DNA of 64,000 bases from Adineta vaga (GCA_021613535.1 CP075493.1:124001-188000); one strand, 5' to 3'; shown: positions 1,343 to 29,100, counted from the stretch's first letter. Made by a program: numbers and translations. The notes: generated by a model from the letters alone, not told the origin.

Positions 1343-1350
1343 TTAAACTA

Positions 1351-4028: not shown

Positions 4029-4274
4029 TAGTTGGATGCAGTCGTGTTTTTCAAAGTATTTTATCTTTGAAAAAATACACCGAATACTATATAAACTAAT
4101 CGGTTTCGGCAGTCAAGCATGATGTTTCAAATGATGAATGGCAAGACTCAAGTCCAAATGATGATTAAAATTTTAAATTAATCAGATTTGTGCTAAGAAC
4201 ACTTATTTTTGAATGCTGCTTCTATAAAGCTCACAATTATTGTATAAAGACATTTGTATCGTTTGATATTTCAG

Positions 4275-4975: not shown

Positions 4976-5802
4976 CCAATACGACAAATATATTAAATGC
5001 TAATATAAAAAACTGGTAAATATTAGCAAGATTAAACTGTAAAGAAACATTTTTATATGTTATATAAGCGGACCACATATTACTTTTTTTAAACCTGGAA
5101 CATTATTTTATTTTCTCCAGCGTATTTATCCATATTGAAAAAAAAACGGAAAATGAGACACCCTAAATAATGGGTTACGAAGCTCACGCCGCAAGGAAAG
5201 TTTCTCAGCTTAACAATTGCTTTCCACTTGAAACGTAATTGAATATAAACAATCAATCATGCTGAATTTGAATAACAAAGTCTGTACGGCTAATTAAACC
5301 ATTAATATCTTAGTTTTGTAGAAATCAGCTGTTCATAAAAAGTCTCCCCGTTGTAAAATGATTTCCTGAGGTTCTCAGATCAGAGAGCACATTCAATTGA
5401 ATATAAGAACGTATTTTTGTTGATTTTTACCGACTACTAATATCTATCAAACATAAAACTTCACGTGTGTCAATAGCTTTTCCATTCCTAATAATTTTTC
5501 GAAATTACTTTTTCGATGTATTTCCTAAACTAGTAATTATCATAGGATTGTTATGACAAAATGCTGGTAATTTTATTATTTATATCAGCTGTGACATCTA
5601 TTAGTTCATGTGACATCTTTTGAATATTGCTACAATGCACAAATGCAAATTTGTATCATGCGATGGTAATATCCAATTCCCAGGAAATTCAAATAAAACA
5701 TGATCATAGTTAGTATCTTGGAAATTCATTTAACTCAATATCAATAATGGACATAGTCTAACATTTATATTTAATATAGAAAAAAAGTTTAGAGTATCGA
5801 CT

Positions 5803-5891
5803 GGGTTGGGTTGGGTTAGCATGGGTTGAGGGTGGCTAGGGTGTGGGTGTGGGTTGGTTAAGCGTATAGCCTGCCCCACACCCACACCCTC
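5803..5891. repeat. Inverted telomere-like repeat cassette (GGGTGT.../...ACACCC)
   Basis: G-strand repeats followed by cccacacccacaccc after a short spacer. Confidence 0.6.
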
Positions 5892-6639
5892 GGTCTGGCT
5901 GCAAGGTTCCTTTTGAATGAATGCGTTACCATGGCTTTTCGAAGCTCTAAAACTGTGGTAGTGCAATCAAATAAAGGGAAGTTTTCAACAAACGTAGGTC
6001 GTCCAGGTATCTGGAGAACGTATACGTTTCAGCTCTGTAGCAACTATGGCTCTTGAGTTAGAACTACTACAAAGCGAAAAATGCTGAGTGCGTTACTTGT
6101 GGACAAGCTCCATATGAAATAAATTACCTGGCTTATGCATATACCACCTATTTTCATCTTGTCTGTTACCATAAAACTTTACATAGGTCAACTTCTTGTC
6201 TTTAGTATTGTCCCAACACTTTATGGACGTTTCTGTAGACCGAGGAAAGCACCTGAGAAACTATGGTGACGTTATCTACGTGGAACATCTTGACTGACAC
6301 TTCATCCAGGTTAACCTAGCCCACATCGTCATCCACGCTCCTCCCTCATGTTCCAACAAGTTCTCGACGTTATTTCGCGCCTAGGAAACCACCATATAAA
6401 GTTTGGAGATTTTACCCATCATAAAACCATCTGGGTGAAATTTCACCCAGATCACTTATATCACCCACGTTCACTCGCAGGACTTGAGGACCTATGGGTA
6501 CTCCTATAATGAAGAACTTGAGGACACGAGGGTAATGCACATGAAGCCCAGCAGACTGATATATCCTGTGAAAATGACGAAAAAAGAACTTTGGCAAAAA
6601 ATCCCTGTACTCCTCCTCCAGGATGGTCTGGCCAGTTTT

Positions 6640-6850
6640 CAGTATTTTTACGAGAACTCAAGCAATTCTTGACCGATTGGTCTCATCTTCGAACTCGACT
6701 GAGATATTAATGAGGCTAAACTGTGTGGAAAATTTCAGCTCAATCGGACTCTCCTTTCGAAAGTTATCGGGTAAACGGACAGATAGACGGACGGCCGGGC
6801 GGACATACTGACCGATTTTAGTAGTGTATTCACTTTTTGAGTACACAAAG
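6640..6850 (-). mobile_element. Dispersed repeat, possibly Helentron-associated (DINE-1/HINE-like); second copy on + at ~9943..10140
   Basis: The two copies are homologous (tttgtatactcaaaaag..gaatcggtcagt..gtccg..; tcaatatctcagtcga.ttcgaagatga) and carry a GTCC/GTCT-type microsatellite. Family call is inference. Confidence 0.5.
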
Positions 6851-9800
6851 AAAATTTTTCGTTCAGAAATCGCCGTACTCCCCCCCCCCGGCATGATTTT
6901 TTTATTCTACTTCCTGTGGTCCCCTAAGGCGATTTCTGAACGAAAAATTCTTTTTTCGATAAAAATAGGTAATCTGATACAGTTTTTCGCGCTGATTTCG
7001 AATATACTATTCATTTCTCACAGAAATCAAATTTAGATGCTAAAATCCATCAAAACCCCTTTTCCCTACATAAAATGTAGGAAAAATCAGTATTTATGCT
7101 ATGTCTCGGGGAAAATACCATTAAACTTGCATTAATTTGTGATCAAAATGATCAGCATAATTAGCTCTACAATCTCTTGTGAAATAAGACTCAATCACAT
7201 GTTCGAAACGTGGCCGAATTCACCGAAAGTGATACAGAAATTCCAAGAAAACGTATTGTTGGTACTTTTCTCGGTTAAGGATACAGTTGGCGAGCGAAAA
7301 AAATAGTGCATTTTGTAGAGCAACTTCTGCTCTACAAAACAGTATATATGACAAATCTGAGTCATTCCATTTTTCTGGTCAAATTTTTGGCGGGCAGTAA
7401 TTCACTTTGTGAGTCAAGGGACGGGAAAAAAATTCGCGAAACTGATCTTAATTCTTGAAGATTCTGATGCAGCGTCTCACGAAGATTCAGAATATGCCAT
7501 TGGTTTCTTGATTTGACCGAATTAGGGCACAGTTTCATCGATTTTTCGGTTGCTTTGACTACTTTTTCTTCGCAAAAATAATCATGGGCAAAAACAGTAT
7601 TCGCACTATATCTTAGTGAAAAAGAGGTCTAATCGAATAACGTGTTTTGGCAAAATGATCAGCTCAAAAAGCTCTACAAACCCTGAAAATTTCGTTGAAA
7701 TCGGAGAAGGTTGCTGGATGGACCTGGCGAACTCCCATGGATATACCCATATAAGTGTTTATCTTTTTGAGACAGCTTTAAGCGCAATCCCTATGGAATT
7801 GAAAGTGTGGAACATGATAATACTAAAAGCCTTGTAAATCCGATATAAATAGTTTTATAACTAATGGTTACCAAGCGCTTTATTCGATCGTGATCTCTGA
7901 TAGTCTTTAGGCCTTTTATCTGTCAAAGCCTTGGTGGCAAATGAGAAGGATTCAGGAAATAGGCTTTTAACAGTCGCTACAAATGGAAGGAGAAGTTCAG
8001 GCGGAGCTCTGACGTTCACGATTTCGGGGCGCGGGAGTTCACGAAACGTTGCTTTACCTGTTACTGTCTGTGATGTCATTTTTTACCCTTTTCTGTAACG
8101 GTCTGGGGGGATGGGTGATAGTTTCTGCCCTAAAATACTTCAACGCTCTCTTTCAGATTATGTTTCACAAAAGCACAGTAATAAAACAGAACTTTAAGGT
8201 AAACCATGCGTTAAATGCAAGGTGGGAAAATCTCATTCCGGTATTTTCGTGCAGTCCGAATTATTACAATACTAGGAGAGGTATCTGATGTTGGTCCAGA
8301 ACGTTCCAGACTGAAAACTTCATATATCAGAAAACAACAGGGGATGTAGAGAGGGTTGTGCTTGAAATTTTTCATCTACCACCACAGCATATATCGCCTT
8401 GCATATGTGAGATAGAACAAGTCAAACTATGTAGCACTCCAAACCCACCCGTTTTCTTATAGCTACAGCTACAAAATCTATCCCCTTTCTTGCAGTTTCC
8501 GCTGCAAAATCTATTCCTTTTTTTACAAATCCTATTGTGAAAGCCAGCCCTTTTCTTACAGCTCTCACTTTAAATAAATATCTCCACTTCAGTTCGGACC
8601 TAAAAGACATTAGACTTTTCGTTAAAGTTTTGATCTGTCACGAATACACTCAAGTCCATGATAAAGCACGTTAGTCCAGCAAATATTGTTTGTGGATGAG
8701 CATCGTAATTCTCGTTCCTTCTCATTTCCGGAGTGCCTGATCTTTTATACTTCAGATTGGGTTTTGGAAAAAAGTCAACCTTTTCATTTGTATTTAGAGC
8801 GGGGATTAAGGAGACTTACAAGGGTGTGGGTGTGGGTGTTTAAATACTAATGCACTCACACCCATTCTCAAGATGGGGTTGGGAGATCGATCCCCCTCCC
8901 TCCGCCCCGGGATCGAAAGATTTGACCTCTGTATGGTAGCATAGACCAAAAGTTTTTTTTCTGTCAAGTGAAATAATATTTTGTTTTAAAGTTTGGAGGT
9001 AATCTTCGAGTTGTCGAAAAGCTTTTAGGAACCTTCCAAAACACTTTTTTCACAAAATTTCGAAAAAAATCCTTAAAAATGTAAACATTTTTTAATAAAT
9101 TTTTAAAAATCTTTCGAAAATCTCTGAAAATTTTAAAATTTTTTCGTAAAATTTTCAAAAAGCTATCGATGTTGCTAGCATTTTTCGGCTCTCAAAGTAT
9201 CGCTATAGTCAATCCCCCCCCCAAAAAAAATTTTGGCTACATGCCTGGCTGTTACAGAGCCTAAATCCATTGACAAATAACAAAAAAGTTATAAGATTTT
9301 CCACAGGCCAAGTGAAATCGGATTACAGGAAAACGTCGAAGAAAGAAAAAGAAAATACCCATATATGTAAGTTTTCTTTTTCTTTTTTCGACGTTTTCCT
9401 ATTCGGCATTTCCCTCTAATCCCCACAGCGAACAGACAAACAAACATTCTTCTTTATATATATAGATATATATAGATACAATATCCAAAAACTATTTCTA
9501 ATTAGCGTATCGAAATTGAAAATCCGTAATTGCTTCTGAGCTAATTATTTCCTTATTCGACGGATGTTAATGTAAGACGTAAAATTGCATTTCAAAATTT
9601 GGTACTCCGATGCATTCTTCTGCGTTCGGAATGCTCCGAAATGAGATTTTTTCCCTTGGTTAAATGTCATGCTATAGGATGTCGTTGCGAAATAACAGCT
9701 GATAAAGGAAAACATTTTTTTCGTCAAGCGCGTTGAAAAATCGGTAAAACAGCGTTTTTACGGTCACAAGCCATTAGAACGCTTATTTTTTTCAAATATT

Positions 9801-10497
9801 TGCCTGTTTGAGATACGGAACTCCACTGCGTTTTCTGTATCAAAAAGGCTTTGTATGGTTATTACTGAACTTTTCCTATATTGCCAAACCTAAATTTGCT
9901 CGACGTAGTAGTACTGGACTTTTCAAGTTCGGTGAAGTGCTCTTTTTTGTATACTCAAAAAGGGAGTACACTACTAGAATCGGTCAGTGTGTCCGCTCGA
10001 CCGTTTACATGACAGTTTTCGAAACGAGAGTCAGATTGTGGTGAATTTTTCTACACAGTTTACTCCTATCAATATCTCAGTCGAATTCGAAGATGAACTT
10101 GATCGGACGAGTCACTCTTGAGCTATTGGAAAAATACGTATATTTCCCGATATTTTCTAATACACTTTTAGTAGTACATATAACTCTCGGAAAAAAACCT
10201 AAAGTTTCCGGATTTATTTAGGATGAAGATTTACAGAGATAAAACTTATTATGTGAAACTATATTCTGAATTAACTTTGACTAGTTTGATGAATGTGAAC
10301 TAGAAGCAGTACTGACTCAGTACGAAAAGACGAAAGGACATTTTAGCTCATGTTTCCCGTAATCGATTTACCGATATCAATTTAACGGCGTCGGATATTA
10401 ACTTTTTTTTTCTAGACAGTGTGTTTCTATTCGCAACTTCTGTACGGTACGGTTAAATATTCGCAGTAAAGACAACGTTAGCACGACAAATTCCATT

Positions 10498-13400
10498 ATG
10501 CAACTGTTTGTCTTTGGAGATCAGACTGAAATGTCGCGTGATCAGCTCTATGACCTCTTACGCTCTGCAAAAGTCTTAAGATCACTTGCAGATTTCTTTA
10601 CACAATCCTGTAATGCTCTCAAATATGAGATCTCGTTATTGAATAGGCTGGACCGCAATCAATTTCCTGTATTTAACACACTCAGTGAACTCATCGATAA
10701 TTATTATCAATTTTGTGCTCATAATGATACTATTAATGGTGTACTCATCTGTCTGGCTCAACTTGGATGTTTTATCAGGTATGTACATACATTCCGCCAA
10801 GATAACTCTGTTGAATTATCACGCATTCCGACCACCTCCATTAATTGCAGATTTATGGAAACAACGTCTTCCTCGTATCCATCGTCCGATTCCATTTATG
10901 TCGGTCTTTGCACTGGTCTTCTATCAGCTGCAGCTATTGCAACATCAAAATCTCTCACTCACTTGATGACAACAGCTATAGACATCGTACGTATTTGCTT
11001 CAAAATAGGACTAGTGGCAAAACGTCGTGCTAAACAGTTAGAGCCGGAAAACTGCATTAAGAATACTTGGTCAATGTTGGTCACAAATCTTTGTTCCAGT
11101 GAAGCGCAATCAATGATTGACATCTCGCAGAAAGAACAGGTAAGTGTGAATGTAGCAACTGAATGTAAAGATCTAACTATCGTATGGAAAAACATAGAAC
11201 TAACAAACTAAAGAAAACATTGTTTTCTTCTTCTCTAGAATATTGTTCCTAATAAGCAAGCATATGTTAGTGCCGAATCGATTTCTTCAATAACTATAAG
11301 TGGGCCACCGTCAACATTGAAAATTTTATTTGCAAAGGATCAGCCACTTGCAGCTTTCAATCACATTCCCATTCCAATCAAGGCAGCATATCATGCTAGT
11401 CATTTGGGATTTGTGGATGCTAAGAACATTATGGAGAGTCGATCTGAACTTAGTACTCAGCTTGTAGATGGGCGAATTCATTCCACTCGAGATGGCAAAT
11501 GTTTCCGTGCTTCAAATCTTCGAGATCTGTTGACAGAAATCATTGATGATATTTTGGTCAAGCCACTAAAATGGAATTGTGTTGTTGCAGAACTCATTGC
11601 AATAATTAAATCAAATAAATGTGATGATATCAATGTTTTTTCATTTGCATCACCTATGGCATGCAAACATTTGGCTGAAAGACTGCGTGAAACTGGAGTA
11701 GCAGTCCATATAAAAAATACTGATAAAGATATATCGGCAACATCTCATTATCACAGAAGTGGTGACGTAGCGATTGTTGGAATGAGTGGTCGATTTCCTG
11801 ATGGTGAAGATCTGGAAGAATTTTGGAAAACTTTGATAGATGGGCTTGACCTCCATGGACAAGTATGTTGTTTTCAATCGCTCTTCATAAAAAATCTTCA
11901 TTTTCATCAATACTTTTTACAGATACCAAGTGATCGCTTCGATGTAAAAACTCATTACGATCCCACAGGGGCAGTTAGGAACTCGACCTTAACACAGTAT
12001 GGATGTTTTATTGATCAACCTGGACTCTTTGACATCATCCTATTCAACATGTCTCCACGAGAAGCGGCTCAGACAGATCCTCAACAACGTCTTGCTCTCA
12101 TGACCACATATGAAGCTTTAGAAATAGCTGGCTATGTTCCTAATAGGACACCGTCGACCAACACGCGTAGAATTGGGAGTTTTTTTGGACAAACAGACGA
12201 CGACTGGCGTGAAGTGAATGCGTCTCAAAATATTGACATATATTTCATTACTGGCGGTACTCGTGCCTTTGGACCTGGTCGTATCAACTACTACTTTAAA
12301 TGGGAGGGTCCATCGTACAGCATTGATACCGCATGCTCTTCGAGTGCTGCATCTGTCCAGCTTGCATATTCCGCTTTAGTGAATCGAGAGTGTGATACTG
12401 CCGTGGCTGGTGGTACGAATATTTTAACATCACCCGATCCCTTTGCTGGATTGAGCCGTGCGCACTTTCTCTCTCGAACGGGATCTTGTAAAACGTTCGA
12501 TGACGATGCGGACGGCTATTGTCGTTCAGATGCTGTTGCGTGCATTATAATGAAGAGACTCGATGATGCTATCGCTGATCACGATAACATTCTATGTGTG
12601 ATGACCGGAGCTGTGACTAATCATTCCGCAGACGCTGTATCCATCACACATCCTCATATAGAAACTCAGCAGCGATTATATCGTATGCTGTTGAATAATG
12701 CTAATGTTCATCCAAATGATGTTGACTATATCGAGATGCACGGCACGGGAACTCAAGCTGGAGATACGTGTGAGATGCGCTCTGTTGTCGACGTTTTCGG
12801 AAACAGTCGCGACTCTAACTCACCGTTATTCATCGGATCTGTAAAAGCAAATGTCGGTCATTCTGAATCTGTAAGTACTATATATTTCAAAAAGAAATGT
12901 AGATACTGCGAGCTACATCCATCACTTCGACGTGGTAAAAAGACTAGTTTACATTCCGAACCCAAATAAATACATATAGTTTTTAGAAAAGTTTTTTTCT
13001 CTAAAGGAAGAATGATGATGTAGACTAGTGTAGAAATGGATGTGATTATGAAGTAAAGGAATTATTCGCATTCCAATATATTGAAAAAGGATACAATAGT
13101 AGCAGATTTTTATGTAACTAAACTAAAACCACAATCGATTCAGACTGTATAATTCAACTTATCATAATTTAAAATGATTATTTTCGATTTCTCACAGTAA
13201 AATCTATTGAAACATAACCTCTAACTAATTATTTATGTGTCACCCGTTACATAAATAAATAGTAGTATATTTATCAGCAAGGGTGTCAGCGTTCCCCGTT
13301 CCCAAGCGTTCCATTCCCAGGAACGGAACGGATTTCAAAATACACTTTAAGACATTTTTTCGAATACAATAAAGTTGTTAACGTGTAGTTATCCACATAT

Positions 13401-16400
13401 TAAGCGAAAATATGATCCGTTCTCAGAACGGGGAACGCCACTTGCATTCTCCGTTCCCTTTTCCCCGTTCTTAGAACGGGAATGCCGACTCCGTTCAGTG
13501 ATTGGACGAATACAAGTACAAATACTTGGTACTTAGCTAACTGTACTATGGACTTGTACTCAGTACTTTAGTACAATGTACTAACGAGGGGAGATTCCCA
13601 ACTGTGCAATCGATTTTGAGTTGATATTTTGGCTATAGGCTGCGAGGTGGGGATCACAAGTCCAGAATAATTCTAAAGAGAACTGGGCCGCTAGACCTTT
13701 GGGGTCGAGTTATGGGATTTTTAGGAACTTTTTGACTATTTATTCAATATCGATGAAAAAGTAGTGTCCTGCGGGAACGAACATTTTCCCTAATTTTCCC
13801 ATTCCCATTTAGATTTAGAGAATGGGAACTAGGGAATGGGAATGATGATTTATATTTAGGGAATGGGAAGGAATCAGAAAAATAAACGTTCCCTAAATTC
13901 TTTCCATCTGATATATGTTTATTTTTTTTTGATAATTTTCCTTATTCACATATAATTAACAAAAATGCGTAAGAGCAAAACTAGACTATTGCTTTATTAT
14001 TAATAATGTCGTAATTCAATCATTGATCACATAACTTTCTTCCTCATAATTGCCATCTAAATTATCATCATCAAGATTATATTGTAATTCAAGATCCGCA
14101 TCATCTTCTTGTGACATTCGATTAATCCCATGTTCCAATGACACATCATCAATATAATCTTCTTCAGCTGCATCCATATCATCATATTCTTGTGATAAAT
14201 CAATAGCAACATGTTTATCTATTGAATATTTTCTTTTTTTCATCGGTGTAGCTGATGTACTACTATTTGTTCTCTTTTTCACTTGTTCAATAGATGGTGG
14301 AAATAATTCTCTTAATAATGATATATTTCGACGAATGAATAATAATTGGTTTACTTTAGTTGTTTGTAAACGTGTACGACGATTTGTAATGGTATTTCCA
14401 CTATCTGAAAAAAGCCTTTCGATTGACGTGTTTGTTGCTGGTATTGATAAAACACGCTTTGCTATTTGATATAAACTTGGATATAATAATTTGTTATCAT
14501 TCCAATAAATTAAAACATTTATATTTTTAGGAATTTTTGTTTTATCTTTTAAATATCTGTCAAGTTCTGAGGATTCTGGTTCATCTGATAATTCATCAGA
14601 TGAAGTAGGCAAATCAAAGATATCATCTAATGATGATAATAATTTTGAATTTTTCTGATGGTGGATCGGTTTTCTTTTGTTGTTGTCATTTGATGATGGT
14701 GGTGGAGGATGAGAATCTTGATATTTTTCAAATTCTAATTGTAATAATGTTTCTGCATGATATCGTTGTTGTGGTGTATGATTAAAGCTTTTAAGATTTG
14801 GATGCAACATTGTTGCAATATAATGAATATCTTGAACAATCCAATAGTCAGGTAATTCTTTAGCAATATATTTCTTCAAAGGTATCAATAATTCATTTTC
14901 ATTATCACCAACCGCAGAAAGATTAATCAAACATTGTTTATAAGGAACAACGAGATGTATTGTTGGTTCTTTTTCACTGCTGAGTTTTTCAACAACCTTG
15001 TAAAACTCTTTTAAATATTCGCATAATGATTCTAGACCATCACGATCTACTTTCAAATAATTCTTCTTTTGTTCATCATTGAGAATAGGCGGTAAATCAT
15101 AATAAACTTTTAAGAAAGAATTAAACATCAAATATGTTCCATTAAAACGTGTGTCAGAATAATTAACTGGACATATTGGTAAAAGAGATTGTTTATGAGA
15201 TTGACGAATGTGACTGATAATTGCTCGAACTAATTTAAATACCAATTGAGTACGATCACATTTTGTATTATTGTTAAGAAATGCATGTTGAAGGATTTTA
15301 TTCAAATAATGTGCACTACAACCAACACGTATACAATCGTCTTTGAAAGCACATTTCATTTTATTTTCATTGTCCGATACAACAAAAACTTTCTCATTCA
15401 GAAAAAGACCATATTCTTCTAAGATTTTATTAACAAATGAACGTAAATTAATTGAATGTTGAGTTTCAAAGTCATATGCTTGACATGCTAATGTAAAGAC
15501 ACGAAGTTGAGATTGCTCATCAACATAATGAAGACTGACACCACCATAATGAACACCTTCAACATAAAAAACAAATAAGATAGATGAATTGTCATCTCAA
15601 TAAGAAAAATAGATTTACCAGTTAGTTTTGCTGTCCAGAAGTCCGTAGTAACACTAAAGCTTTTCAAAGATACACATAGAGAGATCAATTGCTTTTTCAA
15701 GTTTAAATAAGTATGTTCGACACTATGACTAATCTATAAAAATGAATTAATATATTAATGAAATCCTATATAGAATATAAGATAAGTACTCACAGTAGTT
15801 GGATTAGGTAATAACTTGTTGATATTGACAGATGTGCCTAAAGTTGCTCCAGCATAGACTAATTGTTTAGCTAAATTTCTAAATCCAACACCACGTATGC
15901 TTTCGAAAGAACGTCAATCAATTGCACAATTGTAAGGACAAACTGGTTGAGTAGCGAACCGTTGCTCACGGTGTAGATGTTTATTGAGCTACTTCACATA
16001 CCCAGAGTGTAACCACTCTACAATACAATGCACGCTTATAGAGAGAGAGGAAGAGAGAAAAGAACAAGAGGATACGCATGATTGGGAGAGATGATCATAT
16101 ATTGATATCACCACATGGGGTGATATCTTTATCGTTACAACAATATTCAACACACGCTTCAGTAATACGTTTTTGAATCAATGGACATTCTTTTAATGTT
16201 GAAGGTTGTGTACAATAAGAAGAAATAGATCGTTATCGAGTTGGAGTTGTTGTTGTCGATGAGGGTGATGATAACAATTTACTTTTTGAACAGTTATGAT
16301 GAGTCATTACTCGTGTACCATGATCTTTTAACCACTTTAATAGACATTTACATTGTAAACACACAATATAATCTTGTGGAATATTAGAAAAAAACTTGAG

Positions 16401-19400
16401 AATAGTTTGTCCAACATTCACTTCGTTTATTTATTGGCTTTTTAAATGAAATCAAATGATCATCAGATGTTACCAAGGATTGTAGATCAGTTTTTGACAA
16501 TACCGATATCGATTTTTCAGAATTACTTGTAGACATTGTTCAGGATAAATAGACTGAAGAAGAACGAATTTTGTTTATGTTAAGAGAATAAATGTTAGTA
16601 GAACGTACAATTTACTTTTTCTCCAATCACAACATAGTTATAATTTATTTAACAACACGTCGCATTCTCATAGAACGTGATGCCGCTAGAATATGATACA
16701 TATATACGTCATTGATATTTTTTCAAGGATAAATAGCGGTATCTATTACTTAGGGAAAAATGGGAATGCGAATGAGAAACGAAAAAAAATTAGGGAATGG
16801 GAAACAAAAATAAATTTTTAGGAAAAGGGAATAGGGAATGGGAATGAAAAAAAGTTGTTCCCGCAGGACACTATGAAAAAGTCAAATAACGGAGTTTTGA
16901 TCTGAAGTTTTGTCCTTAGATGGGTCTATTCATCATCAAAATATTCTGAAAGCTTCAGCTAAAAAAATGATTTTTGTCGAGGTACTGTATTACTAAAACA
17001 TAATCGCTTATCGCCGACTAGTCGCAAAATTCCAGTTTACTTGAAAACTCAATACCTCGACAGAGGAGCATTTCTTGGCAGAAACTTTCAGAATATTTTG
17101 ATGATGAATAGACCCATCTAAGGACAAAACTTCAGATCAAAACTCCGTTATTTGACTTTTTCATCGATATTGAATAAATAGTTAAAGAGTTCCTAAAAAT
17201 CTCATAACTCGACCCCAAAGGTCTAGCGGCCCAATTCTTTTTAGAATTTTTCTGGACTTGTGATCCCCACCTCGCAGCCTATAGCCAAAATATCAACTCA
17301 AAATCGATTGCACAGTTGGGAATCTTCCCTCGTTAGTACATGTACTATAGTGCAATATGCAGGACAACATGGTATCTACTATATGTACTTGTACTGCATA
17401 AATGTACTACGTACTGAGGTTTGTTGAGTACAAAGTACGAAAAGTACTAAGTCCTGTGCTAAGTGTCCAATAATTGACTCCGTTCCCATTCTTCAGAACG
17501 AAACGCAAAAGTGGCTCCTGTTTATCAGTCTTCTCCGTCTATGTAAGAGAAAATTATTGGATATTCGTTAAATAATACTAATCGTTTCTCACAGTCTAAA
17601 GACATTTCAACGTTTGTTTAGTTACTCTTTCATTTTTAAGTCCCCATGAATTATGCTTTTCTCCATTAGTTTTAAATTTATTCTAACATCTACAATATAC
17701 CTAGTCTACGAGTTGAACTTTACAGGCTGCAGGTATTACTTCTATTATCAAAGCTATCATGATGTTACAGCATGATATCATTCCGCCACATATTGGTATC
17801 AAAAAGCGTATAAATTCAAAATTTCCTCCATTGGATACTTCAAATATTTATATTGCCAAATGTCCTATGGAGTTCAAACGTCGTGCGAACAAGCAGAAAC
17901 GAACCATCGTTGTCAATAACTTTGATGCCGCTGTTAGTATTTTTCCTAACGCTTATTGCTTATTTTAAATATTTTTATTAACAGGGCGGAAACACTGCAA
18001 TACTTATTGAAGATGCGCCAGTTTTTTCTACGAAAGGAACCGATCCTCGAACTGTTCACGTGGTTACTGTTTCGGCAAAAACACCGTTTTCCTTCAGAGA
18101 AAATGCCAAACGTCTTCTAGCATATATTACGAAACATCCCGAGTCATCCATTGGGGATATTTCCTACACCACTACTGCTCGTAGAATGCACCACATGTTT
18201 CGTGCAGCGTTTGCAGTCAGTACTACTGCTGAGCTACAAGCTTCTTTAAAAGATTTAGTCACCTCAACTGATGCACCAATCAGGACTTCATCAGTGGATG
18301 TAGTATTCGTCTTCGCTGGCCAAGGCAGTCATTATTTTAAAATGGGCAAAGAACTGTTTGACAACTGCTCTACCTTTCGTAGAGATATTCTAGATTATGA
18401 CAATATTTGTCAGACACAGAATCTTCCTAGTTTCAAAGCTTTGATCGATGGTACAGCAGAAAGCCTCGAAACATTGTCTCATATTCAAATTCAATTGGCA
18501 CTCATTGCTCTTGAGCTCGCATTGGCAAATCTATGGTTATATTTTGGTATTAAGCCTGCTCTTGTCATTGGTCATAGTCTTGGAGAATATGCTGCATTAT
18601 GTGTTGCTGGCGTCTTATCTGTCAATGATTTATTTTATCTTGTTGGAAAGAGAGCATCTTTGATAACTAATTTGTGCAGTCAAGATACACATGCTATGCT
18701 TACTGTTATGCTCGATGCAGTAACGGTTAAAAAAGACCTGTTACAGAATAATACTTCTTGTGAAATTGTCTGTTTCAATAGTCTACAGTCTACTACGATT
18801 GGTGGAGGCACTTCCGAAATCTCCTTTTTGAAGACATTTTACGAGTCAAACGGTGTCAAAGCAACAAAATTGGAAACATCTTTTGCTTTCCATTCGTCAC
18901 AAATAGATTCAATTTTAGTAGATTTTCGAATCGTTGCAAAGGGTGTGTCGTTTTCTAAACCCATTATTCCTGTTGCATCCACTCTGCTCGGAAGTATCGT
19001 GCAGCAGGAAGGTGTCTTCACAGCAGAATATCTTTGTCGTCATGCTCGCGATCCTGTGAAATTTTCCGATACACTCGAAACGTGCAAGACAACTGGTATA
19101 GCGGATGAGCAAACTCTCTGGCTAGAAATTGGTCCGAGCGCTGTTTGTTTAAGTATGATAAAATCGGTTCTAAATGTATCAGAGCCTTTTATTGTACGAA
19201 CTCTGAAAAAGGAGGAATCAAATTTGGTCTCGATTGCTAAGAGCATTGCTAAAATTTACGTAAGTGGTGTTGACGTTAACTGGACGGCATATCACCAGGA
19301 ATATGAATTAAGCCATCAACTAATGATGTTACCGACGTATGCTTTTGATTTACAAAACTATTGGATTCAATATGAAGGAAATTGGTGTCTTCAGAAGAAT

Positions 19401-22056
19401 ATGACTCCTAATGTTCAACTTATTGAGAAATCAACAGTATCTTTTTTCGGCACGACCACTCTGCAGCAAATCCAGAATGAAGACTTTGACTCGAGTGACA
19501 TCAGCGTGACTTTTGTCTCGGATATTGCTGATTCCAAACTTCGAAATGTTATTCAAGGACATTTAGTGAATAAAGTCGCAGTATGTCCGGGTTCTGTTTA
19601 TTCGGATATGGCCTTGACTGCAGCAAAGTATATTCATAACCGTCGCAAGCGATCAAACTCGCCTATTTCAATGGATATTGTGAATATGAAAATAATACAG
19701 CCTTTAATTCTGACGGGCAATTTTGAAAAACAATATATCTATGTTTTGGCTACATGCAGGGCAAATTCGGATATTGTCGAGTTAATATTTGCATCGGAAG
19801 AGGTAGAAAATGTTGGAAAGAATTTAATTTGATTTTTTTCCTTGACTATTGAAATGTGATACTGATATTTATTTTAGGGATCCATAAGGAAACAGCATGG
19901 TAGTTGTGTTGTTCAATATGGTGATGGCGTAGAATGGATGACTGAATGGGCTAGACAAGCTTATCTCATACAAACTCGTATGAACTGCCTCGTTGAAGCA
20001 GCTGAACATGGCAAGGCACATCAATTACTTCGAGGTATTGTCTACAAGCTTTTTTCTGTTTTTGTTCAATATTCTGAGAAGTATCGTGGAATGGAAGAGG
20101 TATGGATGGATTGCAATATGCTTGAAGCCACGTCAAATATTAAATTTCAAACTACACCAGAAGATGGTTCATTCGAATATAGTCCTTACTGGCTCGACAG
20201 TCTCTATCATTTGTCTGGTTTTGTGCTGCATGGTACAGATACTATGAATGATGATTTCGTCTATATTGCAGATAGTTGGAAAGGCATGCGTATTGTCGGT
20301 CAACTTTCGACCAATAAAACGTATAAGAATTATGTCCGCATGCAACCGATTGACAACGGTCAAAAGATGATTGGCGATGTTTATGTATTTGAAGAAAATA
20401 GAATCATTGCAGTTTGTACTGGTATTCAGTTTCAACAGATACGTCGATGTGTTTTGGAGCATATCTTATCATTGAATGCTGACAAAATTGTAGTGCAAAA
20501 AACACAGGTAGTTTCGGAGAACAAAGGTTCTTGTTTACCTGATGTTAGTATTCCATTGGCAGCTAGCTCTAACACATTTCTCTTCGATGAAATTTTGGAG
20601 ATGATTGCAAACGAAGTCGGAGTAAAAAAATCAAAACTTGATGATAGTACAAACTTGATCGATATTGGAGTTGATTCGTTGCTCACCATTTCAATCTTAA
20701 CACGGCTTCATCAATTAACAGGTCTTGATATTCCAAGTTCACTGCTCTACACTCATTCTTCCATTGGAGATCTTAAGAAGTTGGTTGGTGTCGATCAATC
20801 AAAAGAAATTGGAAATTCAAACAGACATAACGAGTCATCCAAACCTGCATACTTGTTATCTTCTACTACATTAAAAAGTACTTCAGACATCTTGGACCAT
20901 CGTTCAAGTGACGAAGTAGTTAGTGTTATACGTTCTATCATTGCTTGTGAGATAGGTTGTCGTGAAGACAAAATTCTTCCATCGACTGTGCTGGCTGACT
21001 TAGAAATTGATAACCAAACGCGCTCATCCATCAGAGGTATCATTCAAGCAAAATTTGGAGTGAATTTATCAGAGAGTTTCTTCCAGAATCGAATTACCTT
21101 TCTGGAAATCGTTAATCAGCTAGGATTTACTTTTGAAGGATGCACGCTAGGATTAATACAGGGTCTCAATGAGCGAATCACTGTTTTGACAAAGCAAAGC
21201 ACATCTGTTCTCCTTCACCGTACATCAACCAGCCGATCGCCATTGTTCTTATTTCCAGAAGGGTCCGGGTCAGCTAGTTCCTACATGTCACTGCCTTTAT
21301 TTGACAATAATATGACCGTTTATGCACTCAATAGCCCGTTCCTTGATTGTCCATGTGAATTCACCTGCACAATGGAAGAAGTTGCTGCGATATATCTAGC
21401 TGAAATTCGAAAGAGACAACCTTTAGGGCCATATATATTGGGTGGATGGTCTTCTGGAGGTATAGTGGCCTACGAAGCTGCAACTCAATTAATTGCTTAT
21501 GGAGAGAAAGTATTGGGATTGATTCTTATAGATTCTCCATGTCCTTTAACATTTCCACCGTTATCGGTCGAATCTATCGATATTTTCGAATCTATCGGCA
21601 TTGCCGACAACATTTGCAAAGGTGCTGGCAAGATTCCAAAATCATTGAAGCAGCATTTTATTGCAACGCTCAAAACTTTGGAAAACTACACGCCTAAGTC
21701 AATGGATTCAGCAAGAGCACCTAAAAGCTTCATCGTCTGGGCGAACGAAGGTATTTTAGAGTCTACCAAATATGATCATATCGAAATTCTCAGAGATGTG
21801 AGTTTTAATAAGACAATGGTTTGGCTACTAGACCAAAAGAAAGATTACAATCCTAAAGGTTGGGAAGAATTGATTTCTAGTGTTGAATGCGTAGTCATTC
21901 CTGGAAATCATTTTACAATCATGAAACACCCTCAGGTTAGCAATCATGTTTTGTATAAATACTATACATTAATGTATTCTTTTATCTAAATTACTTTAGG
22001 TCACCGCTTTGATGAAAGAAATTGAGAAGGCTGTGGCAAAATTCACCAAGATTTGA
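10498..22056 (+). CDS. Fungal-type iterative non-reducing polyketide synthase, SAT-KS-MAT-PT-ACP-ACP(degenerate)-TE; 8 exons, 2093 aa
   Basis: Exons 10498-10778, 10851-11139, 11239-11862, 11923-12870, 17726-17932, 17985-19802, 19878-21935, 22000-22056. All introns are GT..AG and the joined 6282 nt read without a stop. Motifs: SAT GLCTG and ISGPPS; KS DTACSS, EMHGTGT, KANVGHSES|AAG, NNFDAA|GGNT; MAT GHSLGEY and FAFHS; PT dyad GHLVN..CPGS and WLDSLYHLSGF; ACP GVDSL; TE GWSSGG, LIDSP, GNHF. AATAAA at 22133. Confidence 0.95.
14016..16540 (-). pseudogene. hAT transposase (BED zinc finger, DDE core, hATC dimerization domain), disrupted
   Basis: CLQCK..HHNC BED finger, SVTTDFWT, VSDNENKM, CSAHYLN, DTRFN, PATNTSIERLFS. 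N-terminal exons are broken by a solo LTR, a stop and frameshifts. Confidence 0.88.
15931..16139 (-). mobile_element. Solo LTR
   Basis: TGTAAGGA...TCGTTACA termini, 5-bp TSD acaat on both sides, TATAA and AATAAA on the minus strand; 209 bp. Confidence 0.8.
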
Positions 22057-22635
22057 TAAGTTGGGAGCATCTCTCGTTTATGAACATGAACAGAATACAG
22101 TATAACAGTGATAAAGTTGTTCTCAGTTGCTGAATAAATATAAAATTGATGAACATATAGACCTTATTCAAGACATGAAATTTGTGGAACGGATTCTAAA
22201 AAAATTTGATCATGGGTGGGGATGGCATTTTAACTAGAGGGGAAAAATGATTGCAGTCAAAACAATCTCTAATAATCAAAAAGGAATAGAATCCATCGAG
22301 TCCAAGAATTTTTAAAACAGGACTCCAATTTTAAGTAAAAACATGATATTATCACCTTTTTGTGTAGCCCCCACAGAATAAAAGCCCAGCCTGACTGAGC
22401 TCAGTAAAATATAGACAATGCACTGAATTGGGTAAATCAAATATTTATTCTCTCATTTTCTCATAGTTGCGGAGGTTGATATGGCTGCTTTATCCAGTGT
22501 AATAGATAATTTTCTACCGGCAGACATGCGTATTTTTCTCATCAACTGAGACTTTCACTCATAAAAGTTGTAAAATAAGGACGAGGGTGGGTAAGGTCGT
22601 TTTTCGGCCCACGTTTGAATCAATTTATTTATATC

Positions 22636-22735
22636 TTGAGGGTGTGGGTGTGGGTGGGTGGGTGTGTTAGATAGATGTAATACTCGCACTCTCACCCGCA
22701 CCCACACTGACACCGACACCGACACCCACACCCAG
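22636..22735. repeat. Inverted telomere-like repeat cassette
   Basis: atcttgagggtgtgggtgtggg, then a spacer, then cacccacac...cacccacaccc. Confidence 0.7.
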
Positions 22736-22871
22736 CATAAGAGCTACTTTGTAGGCATGCAACGGTGATGGTGAACCACCAGTTTCACCGGCCACTGGTC
22801 CACCGATTCATCAGATTATTTATGCCATATTATCAGTCGGTAACCAATGCTTTGAATCCTACATTTAATAT

Positions 22872-23802
22872 GGGAACTCGGAATTTCGGTCCAGGGACGA
22901 AAAATCAACGGAATTTCGGTCCAATTCTTAATTAAATTAGATTTAATTAATTATCAATTAGTAACTTCATAGTGCTGAGCAACATCAATTTCAAAATTCA
23001 TAGTGCTAAGCAAGTTGACATAGTGCCGAGCAATATGAATATCAAGAGAATCATCTTGCTAAGCAGTATGATACAAAGTTCTTCAAGAATTGGAAGTTTT
23101 ACTGATATAATTATTATTAGAAATGCTTGAGTAATTTTAAAATTCTTTCGTATTTATACTGGATAAATCGATGAAAAAATGATATAAAGCTTAATAAAAC
23201 GAATGCATTTTTATCATACACAAGTATTGTTCGTTGTGGGTTTTGTTTTCTTGAATAAAATATATGTACATATGGTTTAATTGTTTGATAGAGAAACTAC
23301 TTTGTGGAATTAAGTAAATAAATGTCAATTTTAGCATAGATGATTATCTATATCTTTCTACGATATTGTTGAAACCTAGTAACTGAAAAGGAAGGTATGC
23401 TCGGCACTATGTCAACTTGCTTAGCAGTATGAATTTTGAAATTGATGTTGCTCAGCTCTATGAATTTTGAAATTGATGTTGCTCAGCTCTATGAATTTTG
23501 AAATTGATGTTGCTCAGCTCTATGAATTTTGAAATTGATGTTGCTCAGCTCTATGAATTTTGAAATTGATGTTGCTCAGCTCTATGAATTTTGAAATTGA
23601 TGTTGCTCAGCTCTATGAATTTTGAAATTGATGTTGCTCAGCACTATGAAGTTACTAATTGATAATTAATTAAATCTAATTTAATTAAGAATTGGACCGA
23701 AATTCCGTTGATTTTTCGTCCCTGGTCCGAAATGTCACCGGAATTTCGGACTGGGCCGAAAGTTTGGGACGAAAAATTTCTGGACCGAAATTCATGTAAC
23801 CC
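22872..23802. mobile_element. TIR element (GGG..CCC ends, Merlin/MULE-like) containing a minisatellite
   Basis: 8-bp TSD tttaatat; long inverted arms (22890..23030 mirror ~23400..23730). Confidence 0.75.
23428..23644. repeat. 31-bp minisatellite, 7 copies
   Basis: Unit tatgaattttgaaattgatgttgctcagctc repeated head to tail with no spacers. Confidence 0.95.
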
Positions 23803-24883
23803 TTTAATATGGACTGGAGTGTCTAACAAAATCTTGTTTATCCGAAGACATGGGCATATTAAAAGACCCCTCATATTGGAAGACCTCCCCATAATAGAAG
23901 ATTATTCTGAATAAATTATGTAAAAGACACATTAGAAGACCCCCATTGTTTTTCCACGCATAGCAATTAATTCTTTACCCCTTCCGTAAATACATTTTCA
24001 AAGTTTTAGCAAAGAATATATTTCTCTTGCCGTTAAAATGGTCGATACTCATAATGTATTTGTCTGTTCTTACTAACGTTTATGGTCCTATACACTTAAA
24101 ATATGGCACTAATGAAATTCATCGCTATCTGCACACAAAAATAGGATTTTTTAGCAACATATTGGAAGACCTCCTTTAGAAGTTAGTGGCAATTTATTGC
24201 CTATAAAATCACCGATCTCACCGGCCTATGGGTCCACTTGTCAATGCAGTGGGCCGGTAAACGGTACACCGTCATCGTTGCATGCCTACTACTTTGTACC
24301 ATAATAGAGAGCTAGCATGATGCGTTTTATTGGCAACTCATTACTTGATCAAACATTGACGAAAAAAAGACGCCCATATATATTGCTCTAATGAAGCGTA
24401 ATCGCAAGCATAAATCAATATAAATAGCCGTACATTCAGGTCTTACTAAGACACTAATATGAATGATAAACAGCAACCAATCCTTTCACCACTAATTGTC
24501 AATGGTGTAGATAAGTTTTTATCGTTTATGTACCATCGCCGAATCGAACCGCGCTATATGGATGTTTGCAGAACTAAACGTTGCTGATCAACTGGCAACT
24601 ATGGGTCCAAGTAATGCTAAAGAGATCTGCATGAAAACAGGTTGGAAGGATATAGACAGACTGCATCGGCTCCTACGTGTCAATGTAGTGGCAGGACTCG
24701 TCGAAATGCAAGATGATAATCGATTTATACTAACTGAGACTGGCCGTCTTCTCACCTCTGATCATCCGTCACATGCTAGATGTTTTGTAATTACAAGTAA
24801 GTCAATATATTATTTAAATTTTCTTTTTTTCTTGATACAAGATACATCCTCGAATAGGTATACAACGGTGAGGATAACCGTAC

Positions 24884-25625
24884 CAGACTTGGAACCAGAC
24901 CGGTCGGTCCGGTCTGACTTCTCAGACCAGCAAAGACCGGTGTAAACCGATTTTATTCAAATTTTCTGATTTTCATGAATTCTAAATAGAATGGTGAAAA
25001 ATATTTTCTAGTTATTGTAAATGTTATGTCAACTAATAGTCTTTTCTGATTGTGCAAATCCACAAATATAATTGGGTGGTTCCACCGTATCTCTGACACT
25101 TTATACACGACTTTCTCCAAATTGATCTTGAAGGCCATATTCATGTAGAACATAGTCGATAACCTATGTTTGGTCACAAAAGTTTCCGTCAATAGTCAAA
25201 CAGTAAAGAGAACAGCTATCATTAATGCTGATGCGAAAATAGCAAAAACATCGAAAAATGACTGAAATCCTTTTTGGATTTTCACGCCAAAATTGATGAC
25301 CCCTGTTCTCTTTACTACTTGACTATTGAGCGGAACTTTTATGACCAGGCATGGGTTATCGACTATGCTCTACACGAATATGGCCTCCAAAATCAATTTG
25401 GAGAAGGTCACTGTAAACATGTCAGCGATACGGTGGAATCACCCAATTATTAAAAGCTGGAATGTGACATTTATCATAGAAACCGATATTTTGGGCTTAT
25501 TTTGAGTACCTAGTTTTTCGAGACTGAGTTTTACTACTAGACCGGCCGTTTTTTGCCGGTATTTATCGGTTTAACCAAGAATCTAGACCAACCGGTCCGG
25601 AAAAGTTAGACCGGTTCCAAGTCTG
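24884..25625. mobile_element. hAT-type MITE nested in 24855..26481, itself holding a palindromic MITE at ~25070..25452
   Basis: TIR cagacttggaacc / ggttccaagtctg; 8-bp TSD aaccgtac. Confidence 0.85.
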
Positions 25626-25820
25626 AACCGTACCACCCGGTGACGGGTTCACCGATAACCGGTTTATTTGTATACTGATTTATATTGGTGGAGCTTTTGC
25701 TCGATAACGAACATACTCATAACTCATCGTACTCGTATCTAGAAGAAATACTTGAAGCACTCTATTTCAGGATCAGATGGAGAACGAACAATGTGGATTT
25801 CCTTTATGGTTTTCTATTAA

Positions 25821-26158
25821 AGGCCCCCCTCAGAAAATATTTTCCATACCCCGGGTCCTTTCGGGCTGAAATTTACACGGAGGAGTGGTCCTGGTGAGAA
25901 AGGCTTCTAGTAAAATTTTCAGTTCTATAGGTCTTACCAGACCGGATTTTGAGCGGTTTTAAGGTAATTTTTGGCCTTCGGAAAAACCAAAATAACTTTT
26001 TTTCTACAATATATATATAGTTCGGAATGGATTCAAATTATAGCCACAAGCAGTGCGCAACTTTTTATCTACCAGAATATGGAAATTCCGTTTTGTTCAA
26101 TTTTTATCACTAAATTACAATTTTTTTCGAAAAAAAATGATTTTTTGAGGGGACCCCC
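25821..26158. mobile_element. TTAA-flanked MITE (Kolobok-like)
   Basis: ttaa|aggcccccctcagaaaa ... ttttttgaggggaccccc|ttaa; imperfect TIR. Confidence 0.5.
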
Positions 26159-29100
26159 TTAAACATTTTGGTTTTGTATAAAATGATAGTGCTGAACAAT
26201 GAGGTTTAATAGAAAACCATTTTGTCAAGCATGGCGATGTATGTGGCAACTTTTAAACTCATACGAAACCTTTTTGATTAGTTACGAATATAAAACTTCA
26301 CAAGTATTAGCTATTTTGCGATGCATTGAACTTAAGAATTGTTGAGTACTCTTTGTACAATTTGTGGTAATGTATAAATGAGTATACAAATGGAACGGCA
26401 ACCGGTTGAACTGGTTACCGGTTAGAACGTCTACTGATTCATACGGTGAACCGGTGACTGATCGTCACCATTGCATCCCTATCCTCGAATTATTCTGGCG
26501 AATAAAATGGATATCTGTTAAGTCCATGATGAAGAGTAGATAGCAAGATAACAGATAAAGATCATCTTCTTAACAGCGTTTGTACTAAGAGGGAAAATTC
26601 TCATTCGCAGCCATTCGAATGTCTGCGAATGTCACAGAATGGAAGCAAATGTCTGAGAATATTTGAATAGAGTTTCCCTCTTGGTATGCTTTCAATGTAC
26701 TGAAATTTTTTCGGTAATGATTAGGAATAAATTGAAGACCAATAACGTCGTATTATAGAAAACTCTATCGACTGCAGTTATTTTTTGCAGGGGTATATAT
26801 GTGCTATATACCCATTAAATAACCAGTTAAATATCAAAATTGTTTAATTCTAAGAAAAAAATCTCTAGTGTATGAAATGATGAGCATCAATAACAGACTA
26901 TATCTTTATGTAAGGTAAAGTCTGGTCGTAGTGAGGAATGTATGGATAGTTCGGGATTTATTGTAGTCAAACCTATGTAAAAGGTTCAATACCGGAAGTT
27001 CAACTGTCTATGCGCCATTTTCATTTATTGTATATATTTTCTACCAATTTCTGTCTGTGAGATTTACTCGCCTATTGTATATGCAAGTGTTACAGACATG
27101 TACATACACATGCCTTCACATACTCCTATTCATCTGTTTCTGTTATCTTCTATATACATTCGTTATTACATGATTCTCGAATAAACAGATTGAGATTCGT
27201 CTCTCGAGTGAAGACATCGCTAATAGCAAGGCACTAGAGATAGGTCAGCCTTTATCATACATTTCTCCCAAGGGGTAGAGAGTGCAATTCGAGAATCCTG
27301 GAATCTAAAAATGTTTATGAAATCCTCGGGAACGTATCAGACGTTTTTGGAATCCAAAAATCGTAGATCCGGCATAAAATTTTTAGAAATTTACGAGAAA
27401 TTCTTCCAAAAAAATCGATGATTTTTGGATTATTTTGATAAAATCTTTTGACATTACATTATGTGGATTTACCGTTCGGAATGTTGAATTTGGAAAGATG
27501 TTTGCAAACAGCACTTGTTTTCATATATTATTAGAAAATATTCAAGAGACTTGAATTGGAAGGTGTGGGTATGATCAGGGTAAACATATGACATCCGCAT
27601 CCACCCAACAGCCACTAAAAAACGCGATGTGTTCAAATAAATTCATATATTATCCTTTTTGCAGAGCCCGATGAGTTGTGTTTATTGCAAAAGAAATTTT
27701 GACTCTTCATTATCTCTCTCGAGACATATACTTTCCATAAGGCACAATGGGTACCAAATGTTCTAAGGACTATATTTCTTGAAATAAATAATGGAGACTC
27801 AAGATTTCTTTTACTATAGGCACAGCTCACCGGGCTCTACAAAATGGATAATAGATGAATTGATTCGAACATCTCGTGTTTTTTAGTAGCTGTGGTCCCC
27901 TACGGTAGTTTTATCGTATCCACTAATATTCTTAGCTTGCGACCCTGTTGCCACTTTTCCCCTAACTTTTGAGATAGCCACTGGATAGAGCTTGAAAAAT
28001 TACGCTTACGGTCAAATTTTGATGTTGCGCCAAACTCTTCTTCATAAAAAAGTGTAACAATGAATATGTGTGCACTAAATAAAGGGTCTACTTCGACCCC
28101 AAATGTACCCTTTTTCGCTCAGACTATTTTTGCAGGATAAAAACTACATATTCGTAGAGAACTTGACATTCCGCGCTAGGCAAAATAATTGTTAGTAGGT
28201 ATAATCAGGTATCTAATTAGTTGTAGGCCATCACAATGAAAAATGGAGTGAATAAGGTGGTCAAAGCTAAATAAAAAATAAAGATGTTTTCAAAGGTCTG
28301 ATTATGATATTTGCGTTGAGTACGCCTGGCCCTACATATATGCTTAGTTTTCACTCAAGAAAACAGAAATTCTTTTTCTGAGGATACTTGGGGATATTCT
28401 AAGGGCCAAATAGTCAATATTGTTATTCGCGAAATAAATTTGAAAAAAGTAATCAGATAAATCCATGATTCGAGTCAAATATAAATACATAATTTCTAAT
28501 GTGGAACGTAAAACGGTCTAAGCCGTCCTTCTCCGTTCAAGTCAGGCTTACTGGTGTAAAAGAGATATTAAATAAGCAAGAACCCAAAGATAGTCATAAG
28601 ATTTTCTGAGAATCTTCAAGAATCTATGGGAATCAAATGGAACCCATTGGATCCCGTTGGAGTCCATTGAAGCCATTTGGAATCATTGGAAACCTTAGGA
28701 GTCATTAGAATCGAAAATGAGCGGATTCCGGTCTTTCCCCCTTGATTTATTCCTATCTGATATTAAGGGTATCAGCGTTCTCCGTTCACAAACGTTCCGC
28801 TCCAGAGATGGTCAACTCCACCTCTAGAGTTGAAGTGGAGTGTAGTTGGACTTGGAGTAGCCTAGCCCCGGAGTTACCCATCTCTATTCTGTTCTTTGAA
28901 AACAACATATCTGAATAGGGAGAATGCTATTATCTGTCATTCTTAATATCTTATACCAATGAGACTGACTCATCATGAACATTATTCCCACGTATTTTTA
29001 TATTGCTATGCATTGAATCGATAATTACGTTCCCCATCATGCAAAGGAGAATAGTGCCTATGTTCCCATTCTCGAGAACGGAATGCAAAAGTAACATCCC

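Follow-up and report, generated by a model that had tools for sequence, protein, structure and literature searches.

A 64,000-nucleotide stretch of Adineta vaga DNA (GCA_021613535.1, CP075493.1:124001-188000; this whole stretch is called the window, and positions are counted from its first letter unless another contig is named) carries on its plus strand, at 10498-22056, an eight-exon gene whose product is predicted to be a fungal-type iterative non-reducing polyketide synthase (NR-PKS) with the domain order SAT-KS-MAT-PT-ACP-TE. The evidence presented below makes it probable that this is a working rotifer gene, derived from genomic DNA of a filamentous ascomycete (Pezizomycotina), kept in at least four rotifer-like lineages and encoding an iterative NR-PKS. 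The window belongs to chromosome 1 of A. vaga (contig C1, 18,146,847 bp, in an assembly of 100.8 Mb and six contigs), and the gene is subtelomeric, at a distance of 134 kb from the end of the chromosome. It is single-copy in this assembly, in which SAT was found at no other locus and the best KS match after it, 39% identical, belongs to a modular PKS. An intact fungal-type NR-PKS integrated in animal DNA by an old transfer had been proposed in a preliminary description of the window; as a whole, that observation is confirmed as real, and its interpretation is supported.

Gene model, domain content and splicing

Five long open stretches on the plus strand underlie the gene. Joined at the exon boundaries listed in Table 1, with junctions read and checked by script, the exons form a single open frame of 6282 nt, corresponding to 2093 codons and one terminal stop. 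The seven introns measure 72, 99, 60, 4855, 52, 75 and 64 nt, and each begins with GT and ends with AG. Exons, frame and introns are identical to those of the preliminary description. Database searches were run per exon, and exons were joined only for frame, length and motif checks. The public annotation covers less of the gene. GenBank model UJR12997.1 ('hypothetical protein I4U23_000023 [Adineta vaga]'; 735 aa) covers exons 1-4 (10531-12966): it begins at the second ATG (10531), leaving out a conserved FGDQT-type N-terminus (the Pfam SAT profile begins at residue 4 of the exon-1 reading frame), agrees on introns 1-3, departs from the eight-exon model at its residue 704 and reads into intron 4, where it meets a stop at 12966. 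The MAT-PT-ACP-TE half is not part of it, and the gene is therefore truncated in GenBank. The deposition of the product of exons 1-4 under A. vaga, from an 18.1-Mb chromosome, bears out the earlier assignment of the flanking DNA to a metazoan host.

Table 1. Exons, selected introns and neighbouring features in the window
Feature	Position	Strand	Content
UDP-glycosyltransferase (UGT), C-terminal exon	4190-4972	+	Best solved matches human UGT2B (E 1e-11)
Exon 1	10498-10778	+	Start codon and N-terminal part of SAT
Intron 1	10779-10850	+	72 nt, GT..AG, phase 2; same site in three fungal homologue loci
Exon 2	10851-11139	+	SAT with active-site GLCTG
Exon 3	11239-11862	+	SAT end (second half of SAT, 11239-11394), linker, KS start
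Exon 4	11923-12870	+	KS core with DTACSSS Cys, HGTGT His and NVGH His
Intron 4	12871-17725	+	4855 nt, GT..AG
Transposon in intron 4	13565-17351		Ends are 198-nt inverted repeats; holds a hAT-type open reading frame
447-aa open reading frame	14016-15359	-	hAT C-terminal dimerisation domain; transposase remnant or gene
Exon 5	17726-17932	+	End of KS C-terminal domain; last residues NNFDAA
Exon 6	17985-19802	+	KS-AT linker, MAT (GHSLG), N-terminal PT half with catalytic His (GHLV)
Exon 7	19878-21935	+	C-terminal PT half with catalytic Asp, single ACP (GVDSLL), TE Ser/Asp/His triad
Exon 8	22000-22056	+	Final 18 codons and stop; kept in three orthologous loci
Second, diverged O-methyltransferase (OMT), two fragments	24550-24789 and 29407-30015	+	4.6 kb apart
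OMT, intact	30693-31844	-	PF00891
GRE2-like NADPH ketoreductase, intact	32816-33865	-	349 aa

Pfam matches comprise SAT, KS (N- and C-terminal domains), the KS-AT linker, AT, both PT/DH halves, one PP-binding domain and a thioesterase. No Pfam match to a KR, ER, reducing DH or C-MT domain was found in any exon, in agreement with the preliminary description as to KR, ER and C-MT, and a C-MT domain would not fit into the ACP-TE linker of about 130 aa. The catalytic residues proposed earlier for all six domains were each found again and aligned to PksA, the structurally solved aflatoxin enzyme and norsolorinic acid synthase of Aspergillus parasiticus (8cg4, 3hrq, 3ils). SAT (PF16073, E 3e-44) carries GLCTG, an instance of the GXCXG motif of the active-site Cys; the Cys-His-His triad of KS aligns in DTACSSS, HGTGT and NVGH; GHSLG of MAT (PF00698, E 1e-37) aligns to GHSLGE of PksA and CTB1; and the single PP-binding domain holds the serine motif GVDSLL. 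In the PT domain, matched by PF21089 and PF14765, the His of GHLV and the Asp of YWLDSLYH align to the dyad region of PksA and would form the corresponding pair, and the TE motifs GGWSSGG, IDSP and NHFT align to the triad of the PksA TE/CLC domain (3ils, E 1e-35). Two KS strings pointed out earlier, FKWEGP and NNFDAAGGN, are both present, the latter split by an exon junction after NNFDAA. When solved structures were ranked by HMMER alignment, PksA (8cg4) came top each time, with E values of 5e-131 for the KS piece, 7e-111 for linker-AT and 1e-54 for PT-ACP-TE, followed by CTB1 for the KS and linker-AT pieces, with 7zma ('putative polyketide synthase') in between for KS; matches of the KS piece to animal fatty acid synthase (FAS) were far weaker (E about 1e-52 to 1e-53).

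Splicing and DNA continuity were assessed by comparing the assembled contigs of four sequencing runs over 12300-18299. The junction across the longest intron, which had been singled out for checking, is joined exactly (12870 to 17726, GT..AG) in contigs of runs X9 (29+179 nt on its two sides) and X10 (140+30 nt), which belong to two studies and complement each other across the joint; the joint from 17932 to 17985 is present in X9, X10 and X11, from three studies. These three runs behave as RNA, since they leave the unique parts of intron 4 uncovered. Introns 4 and 5 are thus spliced in RNA-like contigs of two to three studies, with run types that were guessed, and the gene is transcribed. In X6, a DNA-like run of 2013, all 30 bins are covered at about 32x, as are the flanks, and neither splice joint is seen; its contigs continue past exon 4 as far as 13307 and, beginning at 17296, run on into exon 6, so that both exon flanks are linked to the intron. 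Given the spliced contigs on one side and the DNA contigs linking exons to intron on the other, it is very unlikely, to the point of being nearly negligible, that the gene reflects fungal contamination or a chimeric assembly in which the PKS of a culture fungus was stitched into rotifer sequence. Such an artefact would account for a protein that is purely fungal in type, and subtelomeres are difficult to assemble (Nowell 2024, PMC11258130). It is hard to reconcile, however, with the presence of the exons in 20 runs from 7 studies labelled as the same organism, or with the recurrence, on the same chromosome, of the repeat family that bounds the transposon in intron 4.

Fungal ancestry, mode of transfer and age

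All named matches to the SAT-KS part are ascomycete NR-PKSs, with 45-55% identity over the aligned part, and include sequences of cf. Caloplaca, Cadophora, Xylaria, Monilinia and Penicillium; the KS core in exon 4 is 62-72% identical to the best 40 among them. In a KS tree, one clade with an SH-like support of 99 unites the rotifer gene with Xylaria multiplex, X. telfairii, Penicillium cosmopolitanum, Caloplaca and a fungal homologue locus, L015. Neither the Aureobasidium/Cryomyces clade, whose KS sequences are presumably melanin-type, nor the clade of a JGI-labelled 'naphtho-gamma-pyrone' sequence includes the rotifer gene. In a tree of exon 7 (PT-ACP-TE), the window gene and three contigs described below (L016, L017 and L018) form one clade with support 100, and among the nearest fungal neighbours are L015, a cluster with X. 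telfairii KAI0442207.1 and X. polymorpha, and two more fungal-type sequences. Exons 2-7 are colinear with the 2016-aa KAI0442207.1, a full-length protein reached through cluster membership of an exon-level match, at an exon-wise identity of 32-69%. The alignment is ungapped at every exon junction (630/631, 700/701, 1306/1307), and the splice model is therefore independently validated. Derivation from a filamentous ascomycete, as proposed in the preliminary description, is hence supported by close non-rotifer relatives that are all ascomycete NR-PKSs and by the agreement of the KS and PT-ACP-TE trees, in which the gene groups with fungal NR-PKSs and nearest to Xylaria and L015. Two further sequences, P0160 and P0174 (KS 71-72%), were considered as distant rotifer orthologues and rejected, their contigs being fungal (GC 0.53-0.54); these contigs were reused as fungal comparators.

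Three fungal homologue loci, L015 (GC 0.51), L022 (GC 0.53; it also carries a Fungal_trans neighbour gene) and L025 (GC 0.54), were compared with the rotifer gene as DNA. All three carry an intron at the codon and phase of rotifer intron 1. In each of the four loci the exon stops after a conserved Ile plus two nucleotides. In the three fungal loci a GTA(A/C)GT donor comes directly after it, and coding sequence restarts with a Y/F-L/M-E/D motif. At rotifer intron sites 2-6, which the comparison covered, the fungal loci are uninterrupted. On the simplest reading, intron 1 would be a retained fungal intron that is still spliced in the animal and, because it is common to the fungi in position and phase, the transferred material would have been fungal genomic DNA and not processed mRNA; the other six introns were probably gained after the transfer. 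The composition of the coding sequence has drifted toward that of the host, with a GC of 0.398 and a third-position GC (GC3) of 0.328, versus 0.352 for the window and 0.51-0.54 for the fungal homologue loci, in keeping with the AT-rich coding sequence reported earlier. Both this composition and the fact that the fungal homologues, where comparable, lack all but one of the seven introns argue further against a contaminating fungus.

Searching with exon 7 retrieved three Logan assemblies at 65%, 53% and 53% identity, the best fungal match being 38% identical. The orthologous contigs L016, L017 and L018 (from SRR23617308, SRR33465424 and SRR18649409, respectively) have a GC of 0.40-0.42, and their coding sequence, as much as 4 kb of it, is free of stops. 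Introns 5-7 occupy the same sites in them, with GT..AG boundaries, and all three retain exon 8; AT-rich orthologues with the same introns in three other assemblies are likewise not expected of a contaminant. Their clade has the topology ((window, L016),(L017, L018)) with support 100. Between the window and L016, with dS of 0.66-1.07, dN/dS is 0.10-0.16 (exon 5), 0.20-0.25 (exon 6) and 0.24-0.31 (exon 7); between L017 and L018 it is 0.28, and deeper pairs are saturated. With values of about 0.1-0.3, well below 1, in open frames that share their introns, these comparisons support an old transfer kept by purifying selection, which is what the preliminary description had suggested.

A recent acquisition specific to A. 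vaga could have been suspected from the lack of any named rotifer protein in two PKS protein searches, in which a length filter hides full-length models. It has very little probability in view of a composition that is fully host-adjusted (GC3 0.33), of six introns that were probably gained, of three further lineages, 53-65% identical in exon 7, that have the gained introns 5-7 in common with the window gene and belong to one clade with it, and of dS values between lineages from 0.7 to more than 1.

Several points weigh against the reading of a working, anciently acquired rotifer gene, and temper the confidence placed in it. The assignment of L016-L018 to other bdelloids is drawn from composition and shared introns, and the enzyme itself is known from the gene, contigs and sequence comparison. 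The trees are FastTree reconstructions with midpoint rooting and without characterised NR-PKSs. As to splicing, the run types were guessed ('?' or 'RNA?'), the evidence consists of assembled contigs at a depth of 1-5, and the short side of the 12870/17726 joint measures 29-30 nt, under the 31-nt threshold for bridging. Reads were compared for introns 4 and 5, and introns 1-3, 6 and 7 rest on the public model, conservation and colinearity. Finally, a single RNA-like X10 contig of depth 4.5 carries an additional T behind position 18021 of exon 6. A genuine insertion at this point would cause a frameshift; neither X9 and X11 nor the DNA-like X6 shows it, and an assembly error is the probable cause.

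Predicted activity and relation to known synthases

By analogy with the established enzymology of NR-PKSs such as PksA and CTB1, a host transferase of the AASDHPPT type would place the phosphopantetheine arm on the single ACP, and SAT would load a starter acyl unit, probably acetyl, since no partner FAS or highly reducing PKS was found near the gene. MAT would then load malonyl units, KS would extend the chain iteratively and without reduction, PT would fold and aromatise the poly-beta-keto chain via its His/Asp dyad, and TE would free the aromatic product, either through Claisen cyclisation or through hydrolysis or lactonisation. Because the protein has no reductive or C-MT domain, an unreduced aromatic polyketide is the expected product class. 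The human enzyme of the AASDHPPT family has a broad carrier-protein specificity. No phosphopantetheinyl transferase (PPTase) was found in the window, as noted previously; two AASDHPPT-like genes are present in the A. vaga genome, on contigs 2 and 5, which makes activation of the ACP in trans plausible.

The gene might instead be a transcribed relic, spliced and open and yet yielding no product, with a dead enzyme, an unprimed ACP or a missing substrate. The depth of RNA-like contigs is low (1-5), neither a dedicated PPTase of the Sfp/NpgA type nor a pathway regulator was found within the window, and baseline expression of bdelloid nonribosomal peptide and polyketide genes is reported to be low (PMC11258130), all of which would fit such a relic. 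We consider it unlikely, given that the catalytic residues are intact in all six domains, that exons of more than 2 kb have stayed open in four diverged lineages at dN/dS of 0.1-0.3, and that the genome holds the two PPTase genes mentioned above.

The closest counterpart of solved structure, PksA, agrees with the rotifer enzyme in the order of its six domains and in having only one ACP, but is a distant paralogue of it and not an orthologue. The chain length and cyclisation register of PksA are not transferable; its hexanoyl starter comes from a dedicated FAS encoded alongside, whereas the rotifer gene has no such nearby partner, resides in an animal host and carries seven introns. The nearest relatives, in the clade of Xylaria, Penicillium cosmopolitanum (N7509_013151), cf. 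Caloplaca (Q9220_006217) and L015, share its architecture with a single ACP and TE. Like the rotifer gene, L015 and the more distant L022 and L025 have intron 1; unlike it, the fungal genes have a GC above 0.5, are without introns at rotifer sites 2-6, and adjoin Zn-cluster regulators, MFS transporters and P450s. No characterised product was found for this Xylaria-type clade.

Among animals, type I PKSs serving pigmentation or defence include the FAS-like enzymes of sea urchins, sacoglossans and birds (pigment), together with a PKS-NRPS (NRPS, nonribosomal peptide synthetase) of nematodes (referred to in PMC11258130 and PMC10531068). The FAS-like enzymes descend from animal FAS and have neither SAT nor PT, whereas the rotifer protein has both and matches FAS far more weakly than it matches PksA. 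Bdelloid rotifers possess horizontally acquired NRPS/PKS clusters, mostly modular and of the bacterial type (NRPS or NRPS-PKS; PMC11258130; Gladyshev et al. 2008, as cited there). These clusters resemble the present gene in comprising a foreign megasynthase that is subtelomeric, contains introns and is transcribed; they are shared among bdelloids, as the present gene may be. Nowell et al. 2024 (PMC11258130) described about 40 such clusters in Av20, found chiefly through a screen for A+T+C domains, and the supplement mentions 12 annotated PKSs in Av13. The rotifer NR-PKS differs from that set in having no A or C domain and in being of the iterative fungal type. On Chrom_1, the Av20 table gives region1.1 (1..40179) followed by region1.2 (865834..900430), and none covers 134498-146056. 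Because the coding-sequence coordinates of that paper match open reading frames of G000:C1, the table refers to the same assembly, and the locus described here is not in it. No paper on a fungal SAT/PT-type NR-PKS encoded by a rotifer or any other animal was found in a literature search of incomplete coverage, and the gene has probably not been described before. It joins the horizontally acquired biosynthetic genes of bdelloids, with the retained fungal intron as its notable feature. Elsewhere in the genome, G000:C3:6806492-6822121 holds at least four KS domains in one intronless frame of 7164 aa, a large modular PKS of the bacterial type.

The corrected full-length gene model is ready for heterologous expression and lets one test whether an animal makes aromatic polyketides with a fungal enzyme and its own AASDHPPT-type transferase; A. 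vaga may produce compounds of a type usually attributed to fungi. The gene preserves a readable record of how it was transferred, and its six probably gained introns are useful for studying how introns are acquired after a transfer.

Neighbouring genes and mobile elements

The intact OMT downstream of the PKS gene belongs to a multi-copy family found in Rotaria spp., Didymodactylos and A. ricciae at 44-63% identity, and another copy in A. vaga is 57% identical. Relatives from outside the rotifers reach no more than 35% identity, and the named ones include a Nocardia sequence and plants. As a member of a multi-copy bdelloid family with such distant non-rotifer relatives, it did not arrive with the PKS. 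Its top PDB matches are AlpH and CalO6. The two fragments of the second OMT are 35-39% identical to residues 32-127 and 180-378 of a Rotaria OMT and have between them a stretch (28765-29092) resembling a miniature inverted-repeat transposable element (MITE); they could represent a decayed copy or, alternatively, a single gene interrupted by a large insertion. The best solved matches of the GRE2-like reductase are yeast ketoreductases (E about 1e-49) and its nearest Atlas clusters are all fungal, which suggests that it is probably another fungal-derived gene.

Tentatively, and with odds that we regard as low, the PKS could be the core of a mosaic cluster built in the rotifer, in which the OMT or OMTs, the GRE2-like reductase and the UGT tailor its product. 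The intact OMT, the OMT fragments and the intact reductase all lie within 12 kb downstream of the gene, the UGT exon lies 5.5 kb upstream, and OMTs of the AlpH/CalO6 fold act on phenolic polyketides. The origin of the OMT in a bdelloid family, and not by co-transfer, speaks against it, as do the neighbourhoods of the fungal PKS relatives, which hold P450, MFS and Zn-cluster genes and not OMT or GRE2. Moreover, bdelloid subtelomeres are rich in foreign metabolic genes, so that adjacency is expected by chance (PMC11258130). The contigs of the three orthologues end less than 1 kb from the gene. More doubtful still is the fuller proposal that the animal makes a fungal-style aromatic polyketide, such as a pigment, sunscreen or antifungal, through a pathway assembled in the subtelomere from a fungal NR-PKS, a bdelloid OMT, a fungal-like GRE2 and an animal-type UGT. 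If true, it would mean that a biosynthetic gene cluster had formed de novo in a metazoan.

Intron 4 contains the transposon listed in Table 1, whose inverted repeats (13565-13762 and 17155-17351; 198 nt) are 95% identical. In L016, at least 941 nt of non-coding sequence precede exon 5, so intron 4 is also long in that orthologue. The 198-nt repeat family recurs outside the window at G000:C1:7470-8082 as a short inverted pair, which looks like a MITE-like derivative and lies close to the chromosome end. A BLASTN search of intron 4 against the remaining window at E<1e-8 gave no match, and relaxed settings gave two weak matches of 31-34 nt only (13279-13312 and 17482-17512), which flank the transposon and match both ends of the approximately 330-bp stretch at 28765-29092. 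The preliminary statement that the intron contains MITE families found elsewhere in the window is therefore weakly supported, by these two short segments; the repeats of the main element recur outside the window. One X6 DNA contig (depth 65, against about 32 in the flanks) skips 3039 nt inside the transposon (13808/16848) and could derive from a copy with an internal deletion, located on the other haplotype or at another genomic site. X6 depth peaks within intron 4 at about 125x (14700-14899) and about 630x (15900-16099), marking repeated segments.

The gene had also been said to stay open while nearby transposases decayed; the open frame stands, and the decay is read from Pfam matches only. 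Within the window, a pogo/Tc5-type transposase at 38639-40310 (+) is split into two adjacent open reading frames and looks decayed, as does a 173-aa Tc1/mariner DDE fragment at 55628-56149 (+). An AT-rich block at 42043-45002 (+; GC 0.28) contains several open reading frames of 115-337 aa without Pfam matches, of which the 337-aa one resembles clusters of hypothetical proteins, mostly from arthropods and one with DUF4218; the block may be an unclassified transposon. Lastly, a 265-aa open reading frame at 57756-58553 (-) has a weak match to an NRPS condensation domain (E 5e-5, below the Pfam cut-off) and may be an NRPS fragment.

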